DNA of 47,493 bases from Selaginella moellendorffii (lineage: Eukaryota > Plantae > Lycopodiophyta), in the NCBI RefSeq assembly GCF_000143415.4, contig NW_003314374.1:88981-136473 (forward strand), given 5' to 3'. The translations under genes were made by a program, and so were the position numbers. Of the stretch, positions 10,931-21,945 are shown in pieces (the first letter of the stretch is position 1; the number at the start of each line of letters is the position of its first letter). A model generated the notes under the pieces. The model had not been told where the DNA came from and did not search any database. It worked only from the letters and a program-made list of their open reading frames with translations.

Positions 10931-12405
10931 AATTTGATGCATAACTGTCCTTGATCTCTATTCTGTTCCACACATTATTAAGTTGACGAACAACAATCAA
11001 AAGTCTTTTCCTTTGGCTAGACCAATCTTTGTTGTCATCCTCAAGTTGTAAATTGTGTAACTTCTTAGTATCTAATATATTATTATATGAAGATTGACCA
11101 TTCTTCTTGCTTTGTTATTTATTCTTCAACTGTTATTAATTAGCTTTGTAGTGTCCAAACTCATTGTAATGATAATAACCTTGCCTATAATTCTTCACAA
11201 AGAATTTCTATTTTTTCTACTCCTTCACATCAAAAGTAACCACTATAGACTTCAACTTATGATATTTAATCTTATCCTTATATCCATGGCAATCATCACA
11301 ATAGTTCTCAATTAAAGGATTCCTTAAATGCTTACAAGACTTGTGTTTGTCATTGTCAAGTTAATGAGTTACATCAAAGAACTCCTCTAAATTCTTTGTA
11401 GGCTAGGAATGACATAAGTGTTGCCTCATGCTCTCATTATAAATATCATCAATAAAATAAAATTTGTTCTAATCTAGATCCTTTATTGAAATGTGGCTAA
11501 TCAAGTAAGTGAGCTTCTTAATATAATCCTGAAGTGTCTTTTTCCCTTATTGGAAATATCAAAGTTTTATGTAAGTATTCTCCACGTCATAATGAGGGGA
11601 AAAACATAGACAAAAGCAATTTCAAATTCATCTATGATAAACTTAAATAGTTTTTTGTTTGCAACACAAAACTCCTCAAGCGAATTCCATCATTGAAAAT
11701 CTGTATTACACAAAACTATTGAAATAACCACTAAACTTTTGCATTTGGAGTTTTTCTAGTAGCCAAAGACTTTTTCACATTAACTAGCCAAACTAAATAA
11801 ACCATCTCCTAAAAAAGTTAGAATCTTGAATTAATCCATCAAAAAAGTCTTATTTGGAGTACTACCATTGTTAGCTTGGAGTGCCTTAATACACCCATGC
11901 ATCATAACTTACGTATTGTAACTATTTATCTTGTCTTGCATTTCTTGTTAATTTTTGTTGAGGTTTTGCATTATGTGCCAACTTTGACCATGTAGTTAAC
12001 ATGGGTTAAAGGGAAGCTTAAAGGTATATTAAAGCATGGATTTAAGGTAATGAATTTAAAATTTTTGGGTGATTGGGTACCTCAATAATATAGTCTAGGC
12101 AAAAATAAGTGTCTTTATTTTTGTTATTTAGCACCAAGCTTTAAAATCAAGTGATCACCTAACATATGGTGTAAGAGATAGGATCTTAACAATAATTATA
12201 ACGACAATATAATTGATTCAATTGATAGTGTGGCTGAAAAATACTTAGATCTGGTGGCTGGAATAAAACTACTTTGTGGCTTGATTATTTAGTGAGGACT
12301 AGAGTGAAAGGTAAACAATGCGTTATATTTCTATATGATTATTACAAATAGAAGTATTTCTAGCATAGTATATGGAATCAATTTCTAGGAAGGTAATAAT
12401 CTTCA

Positions 12406-13974
12406 TCAAAGACCATGAACAATAAGTTTCCCAGCTCTCCTCACATTTTCCAGCGCTTCAAGCATCTGCACGTTCTCAGTCCTGGTAAAGATGCCGTGGA
12501 GTAAGTCGTAGACACTGGCCGTGAATGGGCAGAGCATGTCTTGCATGTAGACAAAGACGTGAGAGATCTCCTCCATCTGGCCCATCTGCTCGTAAGCCCG
12601 GATCATCGTCTCGTACACCCCAGGCGTCCGGTTCACCCCCTTGTCCAGCACTGCCGCGAAAAACTCCACGCACGAATCATAGTACCCGGCCTTGAAGCAC
12701 ACCTCGAGCAGCTCCACGTACACGCTGCCTCGTATCCGGCACGACGAGCACTGCATCTCCTTGAACACCGCGATGGTGTCGTCCCAGCACTGCGCCGCCG
12801 AGAAAGCCTTGATCAAGGTGATGAAGAACTGCTCGCCGAGCTTCACACTGTCGTGATCGATCGTCTTGAGCAGCTCCAGAGCCTTGTCGTAGAGGCCGGC
12901 CTTGCAGTAGAGGCCCAGCATGATCACGTAGCTTGCCTCGTTGGGCCGGTTCCCAGAGCCGAGGATGCAATCGTCGAAGACGCGGACAGCTTCCTCCAGC
13001 TTGCCGGCTCTCACGTAGGACTCAAGCACGCAGTTGAGGAGATAGATGTCGGGCTGGATCTGGCACCCGGCCATGGACTGGAAGAGGTCCTCCACTTGCT
13101 GAGTCTGGCCGGCCTTGGCGTAGACGTTCATCAGGCTGGTATACGCGATCTTGTCCAGCTTGATGCCCTGGAGCTTCATCCGGTTGAGAAGCGTTCGCAC
13201 GATGCTGGACGAGCCGGGTATCTCCTTGCAAACTGAAAAGAGCTGGCTGTACGTCACCACCGTGGGCCTCACTTTGCTGTCCTCCATGTCCTGGAAGATC
13301 TTGAGCGCGTCCATGCCTCGACCATCTCGACTATACACCCGGATCATGAGGTTGCAGATGAAGGAGTTGGGAGCTACGTTGATCTGCTGCATGAGGCCAT
13401 ACCACTTCTCGCAAACTTCCACCTGCTGAGCGTCCGAGGCCTCCTTGATCACGGCCTCGAACAAGCCAAAGTCGAGGTAAAAGCTGTTGTCGTGCATCCA
13501 GTCTACCAGGCTGTTGAGAGCACCCCATTTTCGAGCCACCAGGAGCCTGTGGAGCATCGTGAGCGCAGTGTCCAGATTCAAAGGGACGTCGCCTTGTTTC
13601 CTGGCCCAGTCGAAGAATCCATTTGCCAGCCTCGTGTCGCGGACGAGCTTGAGCACCATGGCAACGTCTCGAGGTGACGAGAGCTTCGTTCTCACTCCAT
13701 CTAGCTTCTCGTCCAGATCTTCCAGGTAAACGGTGTCGTTGAGCACTGCCACCACTTGATTAACTAGCTGGGTGTCGAGAGAAGCCGCTGGAGGGGTGCT
13801 CACGTCGATGGTGTTCTTCCTCGGTTTCCTCTTTCTGTGTCGAATGTGGTAGGCTACGTTGTCAATGCCGCCTCCTGTTCCTTGCGGTGAGGGTTGCGTA
13901 GAGAAGCCCAAACCAGCGACGAACCTCACGGCACCCACGATCTTGTGCAGCCTTCTCGTTGCTCCGGTGAGCAT
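12406..13974 (-). CDS. P-class pentatricopeptide repeat protein, intronless, 522 aa, probable mitochondrial presequence
   Basis: Tandem 35-aa PPR motifs (e.g. VTYSQLFSVC, IAYTSLMNVYAKAG, ASYVIMLGLYCKAG). The likely ATG at 13974 gives MLTGATRRLHKIVGAVRFVAGLGFST (Arg-rich, acid-free). The ORF-track start at 14316 falls in LpxC intron 4. Confidence 0.9.
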   Translation of the reverse strand: MLTGATRRLHKIVGAVRFVAGLGFSTQPSPQGTGGGIDNVAYHIRHRKRKPRKNTIDVSTPPAASLDTQLVNQVVAVLNDTVYLEDLDEKLDGVRTKLSSPRDVAMVLKLVRDTRLANGFFDWARKQGDVPLNLDTALTMLHRLLVARKWGALNSLVDWMHDNSFYLDFGLFEAVIKEASDAQQVEVCEKWYGLMQQINVAPNSFICNLMIRVYSRDGRGMDALKIFQDMEDSKVRPTVVTYSQLFSVCKEIPGSSSIVRTLLNRMKLQGIKLDKIAYTSLMNVYAKAGQTQQVEDLFQSMAGCQIQPDIYLLNCVLESYVRAGKLEEAVRVFDDCILGSGNRPNEASYVIMLGLYCKAGLYDKALELLKTIDHDSVKLGEQFFITLIKAFSAAQCWDDTIAVFKEMQCSSCRIRGSVYVELLEVCFKAGYYDSCVEFFAAVLDKGVNRTPGVYETMIRAYEQMGQMEEISHVFVYMQDMLCPFTASVYDLLHGIFTRTENVQMLEALENVRRAGKLIVHGL

Positions 13975-13991
13975 TGAAGTTCGGAAGAACC

Positions 13992-15257
13992 CTAAGCGTC
14001 TGAGGATTCTTCGTGGGTTCGAAGAAGCGCCTTGCAGAACCTTACGTGCAATGCGTGACTTGCCTGGATTGAAAAGAAAACCAGAAAAAAGTGTCATGGA
14101 CAGCTCAAGTTCTTTCATACCTTGAAGGCGAAGATATGAGCGACGGGGAGACCGTGATGGCCACCTCGACAGCACAACGAGATATCGCCCAAGAGGTCGA
14201 GCATCTTGTGTCGGCAAGGCTCGTCCCGGAATCGAAGCGGCGGATTCACCCAGCCAGTTACTTTTCTGTTTAAACAAAGAGAAGACGAAGAGATACGAAA
14301 CGAGAAAGGAACACATGATCTTACTTGCAGATCAAAGCGTTCTCTCGACTTCCTCCTTGGATCAGCTTTGCTCCTCTCAGCATTTCAATCTGCGAAAATA
14401 GAAACTTTTGAAGTGTCTAGAGGAACAAATGTGACCTGCTCATATAAACCGAAGGTCCGAGCCGGAGCAACCTCTTCGCGAAAGGAGCAAGAATCCGGAA
14501 AGTAAGTGAAGCACTGAGTTCCAATCGCAGGATGCTAAATCCAAAAGATGTAAGTGATCGATCAACAAAAAGAGACAAGAAAGAGAGTACCTCGCGAAAA
14601 TCGATACAGTACGTAAGCATGGAGGTCGAAGCTGGGAAAGCCGCTACAAACGAGTCCGATTCCGGGTTCCCGACATGGACTGGAAACTTAGGCTTGAACC
14701 TCTTTCTTCTAGCAACAGCATTCCCATCCTTGTCTTTGGCAGCACAGATCCCAGCGCGATCGATTGCTTCCACCCACGGCAACGCCGATCCATCCAGCAA
14801 AGGCACCTCGTCATTCCCTTCCAGATGAATCCGGCAGTTGTCCACGCACAAGCCCTCCAAGGCCGCTAGAACATGCTCCACCGTGCGTATCCTCCCCACG
14901 CGAGTACTCAGCTTGCAAGCCTCCGGCACCACAAATTCTGCCGACGCTGGAATCGTGTAGTCCCTTGGATCTTCCCGGAGCGTGAAGAATCTCCCAGCGC
15001 CGGCTCGAGCAGGGAAGATCGTCACGCGCGTCTCCTTGCCAGTGTGTAATCCAATGCCGGATCGCGTCACCGGGGTCACGATCGAGGTCTGGAACGCTGG
15101 CTGCGACGAAATATCAGAGTAGATCCCAGGCGCTGGATCTATCGCTTACCTCTTCGCGCAGGCAGGGAGGAGTGGATTGCGCTCCTATCGCCAGAGCTCG
15201 CGTTGCCAGCGCCAGCGCCCTCGCCCTCGCCCTTGCCCTGGAAGAAGGCGCTAGCAT
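13992..15257 (-). CDS. LpxC: UDP-3-O-acyl-N-acetylglucosamine deacetylase, 6 exons, 332 aa
   Basis: Exons 15257-15150, 15100-14591, 14534-14436, 14389-14325, 14265-14121 and 14063-13992; all GT-AG, 999 nt, phases consistent. Motifs [51 protein letters not shown] (Zn-binding HKxxD) and FKASHALH. The N-terminus [20 protein letters not shown] resembles an organellar presequence. Confidence 0.95.
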
Positions 15258-15535
15258 TATTTTGAAAAACCGCAAGAGTTAGGATTCTAGGGTTCTTGGG
15301 GATACCGGTTGTTCTTCTACGGAGAGGCGCCGGTAGAAGGTCCAGGGGGCACTGCCGCTGATCGATCATCGATGGGGCAAACAGGCATGGTTTGGTCTTG
15401 CTGCCAGCGCTGCGGCATTCTGTTTGTTAGAACATCGCCGGTGTCGATGATCTTAGTGAGGAGGAAGGGCGAGGGTTGAAATCTTCTACTCTTCTTCATG
15501 CTCACAGCGAATCTTTGAGAGAAGCAATTTCTAGG
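15258..15535. promoter_or_regulatory. Short divergent (probably bidirectional) promoter region, LpxC / kinesin-4
   Basis: Only 278 bp separate the two head-to-head ATGs. Confidence 0.6.
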
Positions 15536-18500
15536 ATGGATTCCGGCAAGCCGCCGCTCGCCGGGGTCAAGGATGCCGTGCAAGTGGCCGTGAACATCCG
15601 GCCTCTCATCGGATCGGAGCTCTTGCAGGGCTGTAGGGATTGCATCAATGTTGTCGCTGGAGAGCCTCAGGTATGTTCTTTCGAGATTTCGATGCTCATT
15701 CTTTCTGGAAACCATCACAGATCCAGCTCGGGACGCATTGTTTCACGTTTGATTACGTCTATGGCACTACCGAGTCATCGTCGTCCAAGATCTTCAAGGA
15801 GTGCGTAGCTCCGCTTGTGGATGGGCTCTTCTATGGCTACAATGCTACTGTTCTTGCGTATGGCCAGGTACTAGAGAGAATGCAAAGTTGATACGAGCGT
15901 TAGAAGTTTTATTCTTTCCTTCTATCAAAACTTATGTGGCAGACTGGTTCTGGGAAGACATACACAATGGGAACAGGGTACACTCCTGGAGGGAACAATG
16001 GAGGAGTTATCCCCCAAGTCATGGAGAAGATTTTTAACAAAGTCCACCATCTCAGGAATCAAACGCACTTCCACATCCGAGTCTCGTTTATAGAGGTAAT
16101 ATCATTTTGTTCATCAGCTTTGATTTGCATGAATGCTACTAAAAGTCTATGTTCTTGTAGATATTGAAAGAAGAAATCCACGACTTGCTTTGCGAAACAA
16201 CAGTTACGAAGCAAGACACAAGTGGGATGAAGACGCCGCTGCTAACAAGACCATCAATTCAAATTCGGGAAAGCACTGCTGGAGAGATCAACCTTGCTGG
16301 CATCACAGAAACCGATGTTCACACCTTGCAAGAGATGGCGTCGTGTTTAGCTCAAGGTTCTCTTTCCCGTGCGACCGGAAGCACGAATATGAATTCTCGT
16401 TCAAGGTTTGTTCTGTGTTTTCTGTCTCTAGTTTTCTTATTGATTGGTAAAGTATTGCAGCCGTTCGCATGCTATCTTCACCATCACTTTGGAACAGAAG
16501 AAAAAGCACCGTGAGAAGAGCTCTTCCTCTTTTGATGCTGCATGCGATGACTTTCTGTGTGGAAAGCTTCATCTTGTGGACCTTGCTGGGTCTGAGCGGG
16601 CAAAAAGGACTGGAACTGATGGGATGCGTTTTAAAGAGGGTACGCATTGCATGGCTGCCATCGTTAAGAAGTTGTCATCATCCATTTTTTTTGTTCTTGT
16701 AGGTGTTCATATCAACAAAGGTCTTTTAGCTCTTGGGAATGTAATTAGCGTTCTTGGAGAGGACAAGAAGCGAAAGGAACCAAGACATGTGCCGTACAGG
16801 GATAGCAAGCTCACTCGACTTTTACAGGTTTGTGGGAATCACTTTGAAGTCCTGTGATGATTTAATAAGTGCCTCGTGACAGGATTCACTTGGTGGTAAC
16901 AGCAGGACTGTGATGATAGGTATACAGCCTTGGCGATTTGTTTCCTTTTTTCTAATCTAAAATCCTTTTCGCAGCTTGTATCAGTCCGGCTGATTCAAAT
17001 GTCGAGGAAACTCTTAATACTTTGAAGTACGCAAATCGGGCAAGAAATATCCAAAATAAACCAATTGTGAATAGAGATCCAATCGGGACAGAGATGCAGA
17101 AACTGCGACAGCAGCTCAATCTCTTACAGGCAGAGCTTGTTTGTGCTCGTGCAAGTGAATGCGCACCTACAGTTCTTGAGGTAAGGTCTTTTACAAAATC
17201 TAGCAAACATAATTGAAATTGAGTGGCTTCGTAGGTTTTGAAGCAAAAGCTCTCTTCGTTGGAGGCTAGCAATGAAAAACTACGCAGGGAGTTAATGGAG
17301 TCGCAAGAAAGCTGTAACAGTCTTTGTCAACGTGCTCTTGATGCTCAAGTGGAGCGTGATAGGCTCTTACAGGAAGTTGAACGTCGTCCAACATCTGGTT
17401 ATGACGAGCACACAGCTGAGGTAGAACGATCTTGTTTTTTCTTGTCTCTCGGTTTAATCTAATTGCTCGATTGCAGCCTACCAGCTTGCTGCAGAGTTAC
17501 ATGAGAACAATTCATGATTTAGAAGCAGAGCTACAGCTGTTACGCACGTCGTGTTCTGGCGATGTTCGCCGCGTTTCAACTTCATCCGATGGAGGGTGCT
17601 CCGACATCGTTGACGGAAACCATGGTCTTCTATCAGAAACACCTGCTTAATGTCGCATCTGATTGAGAATTATGCAGACGTTTTTGAGGAGGATGCCATG
17701 ACTGCTAAGGAGGTGGAGCATCATCTGTTTCTAAGGGAGTGTATGGATAAGGAACTTCAAGAGTTGAATATGCAGCTGAAGGAGAAAGAGGTAAACTTTA
17801 ATTTTTAGAAACTGTGGCCAGGATTTTGAGATTTTCTTTTGAAAACATGATTTTTATCCGATGGTTCACAACCTGATCTTGTACTCTGCAGGCAGAGATG
17901 ACTCGAGTTGCAAACAATGATGCTGCTGTACTCAAAGACCATTTCGATAAAAAAATACTGGAGCTTGAAGAGGAGAAGAAGAAGCTTCAGGTAAACTAAG
18001 CATTAGTCTTCTGTTTCTAATAATTTGAAATTATCAGATGGAGAAAAAGCTATTGTCGTCGGAGCTCGAATCACTTCATTCCTCTTCGGATGAACAGACC
18101 AAGAGGATTCAGAGTTCGTACGCACAGAAGTTGAAAGATCTGGAAACTCAGGTCCTATATTCTCTTACACACTTTTTTCTCCTTTTTATTTTTATTAATT
18201 GTTTTCTTTCTGGTAGATTTCTGATTTAAAAAAGCAGCAAGAAAAACATGCACAACTTTTGAGACTCAAGCAACGGAGTGATGATTCGGCGCAACGATTA
18301 GAGAATGAGATACACCGAATCAAGCAGCAGAAGGCAATGTTTTCTACCGGGCAGATTTTCAGTTGGACTTACTTTGCAAGCTTACCATCTCCAGGTGCAT
18401 TTGCAAAACCGCATAAAGCAAGAATCTGAACATTTTAGGACATGGAAGGCTTGCCGGGAGAAAGAACTAATGCGCTTGCGCAAGGAAGGTAGACGGAATG

Positions 18501-19787
18501 AGTATGAGATGCACAAGCTACAGACCTTGCATGAAAGGCAAAAACAGGTGAAGGAAGGTGTTTATTGTCACCACCATTTTAACATTTTGGCCTTTGCAGG
18601 TACTGCATAGGAAAACTGAGGAAGCAGCCACAGCTAGTCGAAGGCTTAAAGAAGTCCTTGAAGCTCGAAAACAGGAAGCTCGTGAAAACCATGTGTCAGG
18701 AACACCCGCTAAACTGACTGCGAAGACATTTCAGGTTTGCTTCAGGCGTCTCTTGGTTTGTTACTAAGCATTGATTTCAACTTTTGTAGCAATGGTTTGA
18801 TAACGAACTAGAAAGTGCTGTTAGGCTGCGAGAGGCGAGGCTTGCTTACGAGAAGCAGAATGCTTTGTAAGCACACTGGTCTCTCTTGGTTCAAATATTA
18901 ACTTTTCTCTTTCAGCCAAGAGGGAGATGCGCGTTCGGACGCTCAGAACGCACCAACGAGGTATGCATTGCTTTGTCTATTTGGATTTTTCAGCTCATAA
19001 TCGTTTCGCAACAGCCCGTGCGACACGGAGGGTCTTTCGGTATCATCTTTCTCGAATGGACGTATTGATTCGTTGGAGAGGACGAGCACGGCAATTACCA
19101 TCTCGACCACGGCATTAGATTTAGAAGAGGAACAATATAGAGTCAGGGGACCAGTTCGGTGGCAGCAAGTGCGTACTCTTGGAGATGCCAAGGATCTACT
19201 CAACTTCGTTTTCAACGTTGCAGCCTGTGCAAGGTTATTGAACGGAATCCCTGGACGTTTTCTAACAACAGTAGTTTTGTGATGTGCTGCAGATGCCAGC
19301 TAAGTGATAGAGAACACGAAAATAAAGAACTCAATGAGAAAATCAATCTCTTGCTGGATGAACTGCGGCAAACGGAGTGTCAGAAGAAGCAACTAGAAGA
19401 GCTGATGCCCACGACCGCCAATAATACTGGTGTGTCGGATGCTCATGCGGACGAGCTCCTCCGGCTTGATATTGGGGGACTTTTGGAGGAGCAAGTTATG
19501 AGTTTCTCCAATCCAGACGAACTTGGAGACGGGGTAAGTGCGCCAAATTGTGTGTGTGTGTGTGTTTTAGCAGTGTCTTCTTTTCTTTGCAGGCATGCCA
19601 GAGCATAGAACCAAATCCAGAGAGCTCAGGAAGGACTTGGAAATGGAGGAAAAGTGGCACTCCAAAGTGGCCGCTCCAGTTCAAGTGGAAGTGGCAAAAG
19701 CCTTGGCGGATAGCTCAGTGGACGCAAAAGAACGAGAAAGCTATAAGGCCGGCTTCCAGTGCGCTCAGGGTCCTGGACATGATTTGA
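15536..19787 (+). CDS. Kinesin-4 family motor, FRA1/KIN4A-type, about 21 exons
   Basis: [10 protein letters not shown]; P-loop YGQ|TGSGKT split by an intron; NSRSSRSHAIF; [13 protein letters not shown]; [14 protein letters not shown]; [15 protein letters not shown]; coiled-coil stalk ([12 protein letters not shown]); C-terminal [11 protein letters not shown] motif typical of plant KIN4A-type proteins. Stop TGA ends at 19787. Confidence 0.95.
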
Positions 19788-19888
19788 TTCCGGGAGCTCC
19801 TTTTTACAAGTTTTTCTACTCGAGTTTTAGCATCCCAGAGCAGGCATATTTTGACCAGAGTCAACAGTTGACCATGAAGTTTAAATTG

Positions 19889-21616
19889 TCAACGCATTTG
19901 AGACCAGAGTGCCACCCCGGCAACGCTCCGGGCATCGAAGGGTCCGTCTAGAGCATATTCTAGCGCATTTTCACCCAGGATGGCATCCCCTTGCTCCCTG
20001 CAAGCTCCCGCCATGGACATCCACGCCATGGAGCTGGGCTGGTACGGCATAGACCCGGCCAGCTCGGCGGCCGTACACACCTCCCCGGAGCGCGCGAGCA
20101 TGTCCACCATGCACACGAAATGCCTGGCCCCCGGCTCCACGCCGTACATGGACCACATGGACACGAAATACGCCCACCCCGTCCGTACGAGGCCCGCGTG
20201 TGCGCACGCCGCCAGGACGTTAATGAAGGTCACGCCGTCGGGGGCCTCGCCGTGGAGCACCATGGCGTGGAATATCCCCAGCGCATCCCGCAGATGCCCG
20301 CTCTGGGCATATGCCGCCAGCATCGCGGTCCAGGTGACGCGATCCCGGGAAGATTCCATAGCGTCGAAGAGATCCCTGGCCACTTCCAGGTGGCCCATCC
20401 TACCGTACATGGACAGTAGCGCGTTGTGGGCCTGGGCGTCGTCTGGCCGTACGCCGCTGGCCAGGAGCTCGACATGGACGAGCTTGCCCTCGCGCTCGGC
20501 GGGCACGGCAGCGCAGGCATCGATCGCGGCCACAAATGTCTCGCGCACTGGATTGATCCCTTCCACGATCATGAGCTTGAAGAGATCCAAGGCCTCGCTG
20601 GGCCGCGCGCTCTGGCAGTAGCCAGAGATCATCGCGTTCCAGGCCACCGTGTCTCGATCGGGCATTTGATCGAAGATTTCTCGGGCACAGTCGATCTCGC
20701 CAAGCTTGTTGTAGCCTGAGATGATCGTAGTCCAAGAAATTGGATCAGGATGAGGCATGCGAGCCAGCAATCGCCGAGCTTCCTGCATTTGCCCTTTTTG
20801 GGCATATGCGGAAATAATCACGTTATAAGTCGCGGCTTCCGGGTCTTGGACCCGATCGAAGAGATTCCTTGCTTCTCGGAGATCGTCATCGCTGCCGCCA
20901 ATGTATGCGGCGATTATTGTCGTCCAGGATGTGGAGTCCTTGCTTGCGATGCGATCGAACATCCAGCGAGCGCGAGAAATATCCCCTATTTGGGCATATG
21001 CCGCGAAGAGGATCGTCTGCGCGACCACGTCCTGTTGTTGCAACCCATTGAAAATTTCTTGCGCGCGATCGATCCGCCCTTGAGCTACACAAGCAGCCAT
21101 GATCGAGGTGGAAGAAACGAGACCGAATTGTGGTGATCGATTAAGCAGCGCCATCGCGAGATCCAAATGCCCAGATTGGGCAAGCGCTGTGATTATCGCG
21201 TTCCAAGACACTGGATCTCTCTCCGGGCACTCACAGAAGAGATCGCTCGCCGCTACAACTCTATCCGCCCTCGCCAGCGCCGCTATCACCGTGTTGTACG
21301 ACACCACGTCCCGGGCGGGCATCTTGGCAAAGATTCTCTCCGCCTCGCCGGGCTGGGAGTGCCGTACGTGCGCGGCGATGAGAATATTCCAGGAGAAGAG
21401 GTTCCGTGCGGCAGCGATGGCGTCGAAGGCGTTCCGTGCGTCTGCCAGGCTGCCCATAATTCCGTACATTTGGACCAGGGTGTTGGCCAGGAGAGTGTTC
21501 TTTAGGTAGTGCCTGGTCGCGGCAATTTGGACGTGGACGCGGTGGACGTCGATTAGGGTCGCGCAGCGCTGGATCAATCCCAGGTACCTGTGGAGCTCTT
21601 CCTTGGCCAAGAACAT
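19889..21616 (-). CDS. PLS-class PPR protein (many 31-aa S/SS motifs, P-L-S, truncated E domain, no DYW), intronless
   Basis: Repeats such as RDVVSYNTVIAAL, RDPVSWNAIITAL and RDTVAWNAMISGY; PDGVTFINVLAACAHAGLV..G..YF.SM...YGVEP...HFVCMVDMLARSG; ends soon after MPYQPSSMAWMSMAGAC. Confidence 0.92.
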   Translation of the reverse strand: MFLAKEELHRYLGLIQRCATLIDVHRVHVQIAATRHYLKNTLLANTLVQMYGIMGSLADARNAFDAIAAARNLFSWNILIAAHVRHSQPGEAERIFAKMPARDVVSYNTVIAALARADRVVAASDLFCECPERDPVSWNAIITALAQSGHLDLAMALLNRSPQFGLVSSTSIMAACVAQGRIDRAQEIFNGLQQQDVVAQTILFAAYAQIGDISRARWMFDRIASKDSTSWTTIIAAYIGGSDDDLREARNLFDRVQDPEAATYNVIISAYAQKGQMQEARRLLARMPHPDPISWTTIISGYNKLGEIDCAREIFDQMPDRDTVAWNAMISGYCQSARPSEALDLFKLMIVEGINPVRETFVAAIDACAAVPAEREGKLVHVELLASGVRPDDAQAHNALLSMYGRMGHLEVARDLFDAMESSRDRVTWTAMLAAYAQSGHLRDALGIFHAMVLHGEAPDGVTFINVLAACAHAGLVRTGWAYFVSMWSMYGVEPGARHFVCMVDMLARSGEVCTAAELAGSMPYQPSSMAWMSMAGACREQGDAILGENALEYALDGPFDARSVAGVALWSQMR

Positions 21617-21937: not shown

Positions 21938-21945
21938 TAGGGTTT
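21938..21945 (+). promoter_or_regulatory. Telo-box (TAGGGTTT) in the PPR/WD40 divergent intergenic region
   Basis: Exact reverse complement of AAACCCTA, about 160 nt upstream of the WD40 ATG. A (CT)n tract lies at 21733-21752. Confidence 0.4.

Follow-up and report, generated by a model that had tools for sequence, protein, structure and literature searches.

At the read-through and tandem-overlap loci of Arabidopsis, two complete same-strand nuclear genes lie in continuous RNA, the upstream terminator is weak or missing, and translation of the downstream open reading frame (ORF) is expected to be poor when it is carried on the long RNA (Kurihara et al. 2022, PMC9768141); 271 read-through loci yield polycistronic RNAs in which the second ORF is seldom translated (PMC9768141). 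Green-algal polycistronic genes combine unbroken RNA with out-of-frame ORFs, a short spacer and a short leader (Gallaher et al. 2021, PMC7896298; PMC11291117). Among the curated algal bicistrons, ORF 1 is short (medians of 291-357 nt), few start codons precede ORF 2, and the start context is weak at ORF 1 and stronger at ORF 2; short leaders favour leaky scanning, and inter-ORF spacers down to 14 bp occur (PMC11291117). One added AUG reduces ORF 2 output to background in a synthetic reporter and to under half at endogenous loci (PMC11291117; PMC7896298). CDC26-TTM3, found in land plants and green algae, encodes two unrelated proteins possibly on one mRNA, the first from a deeply conserved, 65-codon ORF that resembles a long upstream ORF (PMC11291117). 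Here we compare with these systems a nuclear gene pair of the lycophyte Selaginella moellendorffii, located in a 47,493-nucleotide stretch of contig NW_003314374.1 (positions 88,981 to 136,473; hereafter the window, whose numbering is used throughout). The upstream gene encodes LpxC (UDP-3-O-acyl-GlcNAc deacetylase), and the downstream gene, on the same (minus) strand, encodes a P-class pentatricopeptide repeat (PPR) protein whose ATG follows the LpxC stop codon after 17 nt.

Like the Arabidopsis loci, the Selaginella pair consists of two complete genes joined in continuous RNA, with a terminator of the upstream gene that is weak or missing; unlike them, its 17-nt gap leaves no room for a 3' untranslated region (UTR) belonging to the upstream gene, and no intergenic splicing is seen. 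It shares with the algal genes the short spacer, the out-of-frame ORFs, the short leader and the unbroken RNA, but the LpxC ORF is about three times as long as the algal median, shows no depletion of AUGs and carries the better of the two start contexts. Moreover, the joint RNA is known from contigs rather than long reads, and no conservation of the pair was seen in LpxC RNA contigs of two other plants. With CDC26-TTM3 it has in common a land-plant nuclear setting and two unrelated proteins, whereas the LpxC ORF spans 332 codons and the pair was not seen in the LpxC transcripts of two other plants.

We favour, with moderate confidence, an arrangement of overlapping tandem units, in which the PPR mRNA starts within the 3' part of LpxC and the LpxC RNA probably reads on to the poly(A) region of the PPR gene, giving nested RNAs. 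Both genes are transcribed, and no break in RNA coverage separates the LpxC exons from the PPR ORF across the stop and the spacer. If the genes merely overlap, the locus is a clean, extreme case of gene-boundary compression in the S. moellendorffii genome, in which a promoter would lie within LpxC exon 6 and one poly(A) region may be shared. If, instead, the PPR protein is translated from the long RNA, the locus would be a notable vascular-plant bicistron with a full-length enzyme ORF upstream, an arrangement that no plant mechanism known to us explains.

The LpxC-PPR junction and the RNA across it

LpxC occupies 15257-13992 on the minus strand, in six exons (15257-15150, 15100-14591, 14534-14436, 14389-14325, 14265-14121 and 14063-13992) that join into a 999-nt spliced ORF of 332 aa. 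Its five GT..AG introns measure 49, 56, 46, 59 and 57 nt. The ORF ends with TAG at 13994-13992, the spacer covers 13975-13991 (17 nt, minus strand), and the PPR ATG stands at 13974, in a frame shifted by one base relative to that of LpxC; an earlier, sequence-only reading of this DNA had described the stop, the gap, the shared strand and the difference in frame in just this way. The window region 15600-12200 matches GL377678.1 (GCA_000143415.2) base for base, scaffold positions being the window position plus 88,980. The second S. moellendorffii haplotype of the locus, GL377620.1 (allele L002), also carries the pair and keeps the TAG, the 17-nt spacing and the ATG, with one single-nucleotide polymorphism (SNP) in the spacer at 13977. 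The LpxC stop is enclosed by a 10-bp hairpin (13984-14012, minus strand, -12.6 kcal/mol) that ends 9 nt before the PPR ATG and is probably due to chance. The 164-nt region comprising exon 6 and the PPR start is, as a whole, no more stably folded than shuffled controls (z = -0.20), which lends no support to an element resembling an internal ribosome entry site.

Transcription was followed in Logan contigs of four runs from four studies, placed on 11900-15900. The RNA label of the runs was only guessed; precisely the five introns predicted for LpxC, and one of the kinesin gene, are missing from the contigs, which identifies the runs as RNA. Such contigs cannot show transcript starts, ends or single molecules. 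All five LpxC introns are confirmed as CT..AC joints in the four runs, and in every run (4/4) one spliced contig leads from the LpxC exons through the stop and the spacer over the PPR ATG to 13892. What stops this contig is a group of allelic SNPs (13840-13891) and not a gap in coverage: the PPR ORF is carried on by the next contig (13839-12701), and coverage extends beyond it. Different alleles at 13933 and 14025 appear in two of the four runs, so the junction contig is not peculiar to one plant. The contigs of the four runs contain no splice between the two genes. They thus bear out the contiguity that a single mRNA would require, while contigs alone cannot choose between overlapping genes and a bicistron.

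An in-frame fusion of LpxC exons 1-5 to the PPR protein, by way of an acceptor 4 nt into exon 6, was considered and rejected: the joint is absent in all four runs, and a protein fused in this way would lack the catalytic His motif.

The PPR start codon and its accessibility

The intronless PPR gene (13974-12406, minus strand) holds a 522-aa ORF with its stop at 12408-12406, recognised by Pfam and covered by the RNA contigs. Judged from allelic variation, it is coding from ATG 13974, and its ORF is under purifying selection. The two haplotypes differ at 31 positions of the ORF, 22 synonymous and 9 non-synonymous, and within codons 3-45 five of the six allelic SNPs are synonymous third-position changes, a pattern which indicates that selection on the PPR frame begins at ATG 13974. 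Being under purifying selection, the PPR ORF must be translated from some RNA.

On the fully spliced RNA, the PPR AUG is the twelfth, with ten AUGs between it and the AUG of LpxC. This number is not depleted (14.3 +/- 3.5 in shuffles, a difference of about 1.2 standard deviations). The two start contexts, judged without a Selaginella-specific consensus, stand in the order opposite to that of the algal genes: good at LpxC (AAAATA|ATG|C, A in position -3) and weak at the PPR gene (ACTTCA|ATG|C, T in position -3 and C in position +4). Thus, of the features that accompany leaky scanning in algae, the locus has the short leader (~7-13 nt) and the short spacer (17 nt), but neither a short ORF 1 (999 nt, against medians of 291-357 nt), nor AUG depletion, nor the algal order of start contexts. 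Eukaryotic ribosomes generally reinitiate poorly once they have translated a long ORF, and UGGGA, the motif of viral termination-reinitiation signals, does not occur in the last 120 nt of LpxC. The proposal in the sequence-only reading that a single mRNA serves both proteins therefore stands only in part: contiguous spliced RNA in four studies and the lack of a poly(A)-like signal between the stops speak for a long RNA, whereas leaky scanning and reinitiation, the routes it had named, are left unsupported by the ten AUGs, the 332-codon ORF and the reversed start contexts.

Candidate transcript boundaries and competing explanations

Upstream of the PPR ATG lies a stretch free of AUGs (13975-14203, minus strand; 172 nt after intron 5 is spliced out), the last upstream AUG being at 14204. 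On an RNA starting in this stretch no AUG would precede that of the PPR ORF, and such an RNA would be an ordinary monocistronic mRNA; this makes 13975-14203 a candidate zone for the PPR start site. A telo-box core overlaps the LpxC stop codon, at a distance of 15-21 nt from the PPR ATG (AACCCTA on the plus strand, 13988-13994; TAGGGTT on the gene strand). Its presence had been noted earlier and is confirmed here, and it is a candidate promoter-proximal element for the PPR gene. All three telo-box sites within the gene island (13988, 15288 and 21938) lie just upstream of start codons. The site at 15288-15294 (AACCCTA, minus strand) falls between the apparent 5' ends of LpxC and of a divergent kinesin gene, and that at 21938 falls between a second PPR gene and its own divergent neighbour.

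The apparent 5' end of the LpxC RNA lies at 15264-15270 (minus strand): contigs stop at 15264 in runs X1 and X10, and one X1 contig runs into adapter at 15270. Read from these contig ends, which do not prove a start site, the LpxC leader is only ~7-13 nt long. On the plus strand, the contigs of the kinesin gene start at 15285 or 15297. The LpxC (minus) and kinesin (plus) RNAs thus appear to begin ~15-27 nt apart (15264-15297), with the telo-box between them, and the interval looks like an extremely tight bidirectional promoter. With 5' ends so close together, core promoters at this locus already overlap the transcribed DNA of a neighbour. A scan for prokaryote-type promoters and terminators gave chance-level results, which are irrelevant to a plant nucleus.

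At the 3' side, the 1.57 kb between the two stop codons contain neither an AATAAA-like hexamer nor a 30-nt stretch of 70% AT, and GC stays at 0.54-0.65 throughout the PPR ORF. Past the LpxC stop, a stretch with 70% AT or more first occurs at 12371-12405 (minus strand), directly after the PPR stop, where GC falls from ~0.55 to 0.3. An X3 contig ends at 12371, ~35 nt past the PPR stop, and there is no depth below 12302. This region is probably the poly(A) region of the PPR RNA and perhaps also that of the LpxC RNA. Since no poly(A)-like signal or AT-rich stretch separates the two stops, a long LpxC-PPR RNA probably exists.

Under the favoured arrangement of overlapping tandem units, the PPR protein would be made from its own shorter mRNA, starting in the last 230 nt of LpxC (exons 5-6) near the telo-box, and the PPR AUG would be the first AUG on that mRNA. 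LpxC transcripts, having no nearby poly(A) site of their own, would run through the PPR ORF to the AT-rich region past the PPR stop. The outcome would be a pair of nested RNAs sharing their 3' end, of which the longer is bicistronic in structure but has only its first ORF efficiently translated. We favour this reading because the PPR AUG is poorly accessible on the long RNA, because an AUG-free zone precedes it, and because of where the telo-boxes lie; the public annotation, which enters LpxC and the PPR gene as genes overlapping by 325 nt, and the Arabidopsis precedent (PMC9768141) argue in the same direction. The PPR contigs have a greater depth than the junction LpxC contig in every run (75.7/42.7, 15.7/12.1, 14.5/9.6 and 108.5/79.1), which is no more than a weak hint, since genes cannot be ranked by the depth of contigs. 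A PPR start site inside the 3' end of LpxC, near the telo-box, had been the alternative offered in the sequence-only reading; it fits the features better than the single mRNA that was put first there, although no 5' end is seen at that place.

Several observations weigh against this reading. The greater PPR depth may be explained by a 3' bias of the libraries. Over the whole window the telo-box core is not enriched (7 sites against 5.4 expected). No loose or adapter-tagged contig end falls within 13975-14300 in the four runs, while the LpxC 5' end did leave one in X1. Given how loosely poly(A) signals are defined in plants, the lack of a hexamer is no proof that LpxC transcripts read through. 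Finally, a long LpxC RNA with a 1.6-kb 3' UTR is an expected target of nonsense-mediated decay in plants, and yet LpxC depth is not low.

A functional bicistron, in which one capped RNA from ~15270 has both ORFs translated, by reinitiation 17 nt past the TAG or by another non-canonical route, has several observations in its favour. The spliced LpxC contig that enters the PPR ORF in four studies, the lack of a poly(A)-like signal between the stops and of any detected internal 5' end, and the 17-nt spacer retained in both haplotypes all speak for it, and so does the purifying selection on the PPR ORF, which has to be translated from some RNA. A leader of ~13 nt is very short, of the kind that favours leaky scanning, and algal spacers can be as short as this one (14 bp; PMC11291117). 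What makes it unlikely is the path to the second ORF: ORF 1 measures 999 nt where algal medians are 291-357 nt, the ten intervening AUGs are not significantly depleted, and the Kozak strengths are opposite to the algal pattern. There is neither unusual structure (z = -0.20) nor a UGGGA motif in the last 120 nt of LpxC, and reinitiation is generally inefficient after long ORFs. Nor does the pair appear to be widely conserved. Two LpxC RNA contigs of other plants, found by a search with exon 2 (L003 and L004), have ordinary 3' UTRs of 173-220 nt and no PPR ORF, so tight pairing is probably not a general plant feature. A more specific version, which we regard as a long shot, holds that a single capped mRNA has both ORFs translated by termination-reinitiation across a very short spacer after a full-length ORF, and that any other tight same-strand runs in the genome behave alike; if true, it would amount to operon-like expression in a vascular plant, by a mechanism distinct from algal leaky scanning.

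Two separate, overlapping monocistronic RNAs would explain the continuity of the contigs equally well. LpxC would then be polyadenylated non-canonically early in the PPR coding sequence, the PPR RNA would start in LpxC, and no long RNA would accumulate. The shallower LpxC contig agrees with this, as do the looseness of plant poly(A) signals in general and the stability that early termination would bring to an RNA whose long 3' UTR otherwise invites nonsense-mediated decay. We nevertheless consider it quite unlikely, as the 1.57 kb past the LpxC stop offer no A-rich hexamer or AT-rich stretch, GC is 0.54-0.65 across the PPR ORF, and no loose poly(A) contig end was reported inside that ORF. The 17-nt gap would lose its relevance altogether if the PPR start were mis-called, and the PPR frame is indeed open in genomic DNA up to ATG 14316, in LpxC intron 4, from which the 617-aa RefSeq PPR models (XP_024520471.1 and XP_024543609.1) begin with a 95-aa extension. 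This extension, however, requires retention of intron 4, which the listed contigs splice out, and it crosses the conserved LpxC exons 5-6 out of frame before entering the PPR protein proper. Its allelic SNPs are 2 synonymous to 5 non-synonymous, against 5/6 synonymous just past ATG 13974, and fully spliced RNA has no upstream AUG in the PPR frame. Were translation to begin further downstream, at the next in-frame Met (~codon 105), nothing would account for the SNP pattern of codons 3-45. A mis-called start is, on this evidence, scarcely credible. Public start-site data for S. moellendorffii exist (capped small RNA sequencing, csRNA-seq, and 5' global run-on sequencing, 5' GRO-seq; GSE233927, PMC10557634), which makes the choice between overlapping genes and a bicistron answerable without new experiments.

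Gene identities, allelic variants and neighbouring genes

The identities that had been assigned to the two proteins earlier are upheld by Pfam. LpxC is matched by PF03331 on exon 2 alone (E 1.9e-36). For the other allele there is a partial JGI (Joint Genome Institute) protein of 293 aa, P0014, whose exons 2-6 agree with those given above; its alignment to solved LpxC structures (E 7.7e-36) reaches to five residues or fewer from the C-terminus, which shows that the TAG at 13994-13992 is the natural LpxC stop. In an alignment to 3nzk_A, the TVEH, RHKMLD..GD and KASHAL motifs are kept; we take them to hold the zinc ligands and catalytic residues of LpxC. Like the plant LpxC proteins that belong to the mitochondrial pathway of lipid A precursors, this one combines the zinc-binding and catalytic motifs with a basic, presequence-like N-terminus (6 R+K and 1 D+E in the first 35 aa), and annotations of other plants call LpxC of this type mitochondrial. 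The PPR protein has 4 R+K and 0 D+E in its first 35 aa. The presequence-like character claimed for both N-termini is therefore well founded, each being basic and nearly without acidic residues.

On the PPR ORF, PPR_2 (E 7.5e-39), PPR, PPR_1, PPR_3 and PPR_long all score above their Pfam cut-offs, while E_motif, at 19.4 bits, stays under its cut-off of 27.3 and DYW has no match. By its sequence the 522-aa protein is classed as a P-class PPR, with tandem P-type repeats, like other proteins of this class, and without a significant E or DYW domain. A word-based protein search with the full length returned only the two S. moellendorffii alleles and then relatives at no more than 25% identity, the closest from outside Selaginella at 24-25%; the same search with the first 230 aa gave no match, and blanks in such a search carry little weight. 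No functional link between LpxC and the PPR protein is known, and the literature yielded nothing specific on long-read, polycistronic or gene-spacing studies of Selaginella.

The public protein models deserve comment, as the locus shows that both RefSeq models there (P0001, P0012 and P0013) are probably in error. The PPR ORF is 100% identical to XP_024520471.1 (S. moellendorffii), which carries the N-terminal extension discussed above, and an exact look-up of the 522-aa product found it not on record. The RefSeq LpxC model, at 255 aa, results from retention of intron 3 and is without the C-terminal half that holds the catalytic part. This intron (14390-14435) is also kept in one X5 contig, in the same form as in the truncated model. 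Run X1 contains an alternative, frame-shifting acceptor for LpxC intron 1, 4 nt downstream (15096-15150), at a depth of 20.2 against 45.6 for the main joint.

Allelic variation differs between the two genes. Between the window (13992-15257) and L002, LpxC has 8 non-synonymous and 4 synonymous SNPs, in contrast to the 22 synonymous and 9 non-synonymous differences of the PPR ORF, and its exon 1, which encodes the presequence, has in-frame deletions of 6 and 18 nt between haplotypes. The LpxC changes affect variable loops and leave the catalytic motifs untouched. Within the PPR ORF, the four clustered SNPs at 13840-13891 show both alleles in all four runs, and X1 and X10 are without the second allele at neighbouring SNPs of the reference haplotypes such as 13806 and 13802, from which it follows that the sequenced plants carry haplotypes unlike the two reference ones.

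The surrounding gene island is very compact, with LpxC and the PPR gene head to tail on the minus strand and the kinesin gene divergent on the plus strand. The start codons of kinesin and LpxC are 278 nt apart, and the divergent RNAs of the two genes, which appear to start ~20 nt apart, are part of the same compression. Below 12400 the DNA is AT-rich, with no obvious genes. At its far end, the kinesin gene (plus) converges with the second PPR gene (575 aa, minus), and their stops are separated by 101 nt (window 19787-19889), so that their 3' ends must be tiny or overlapping.

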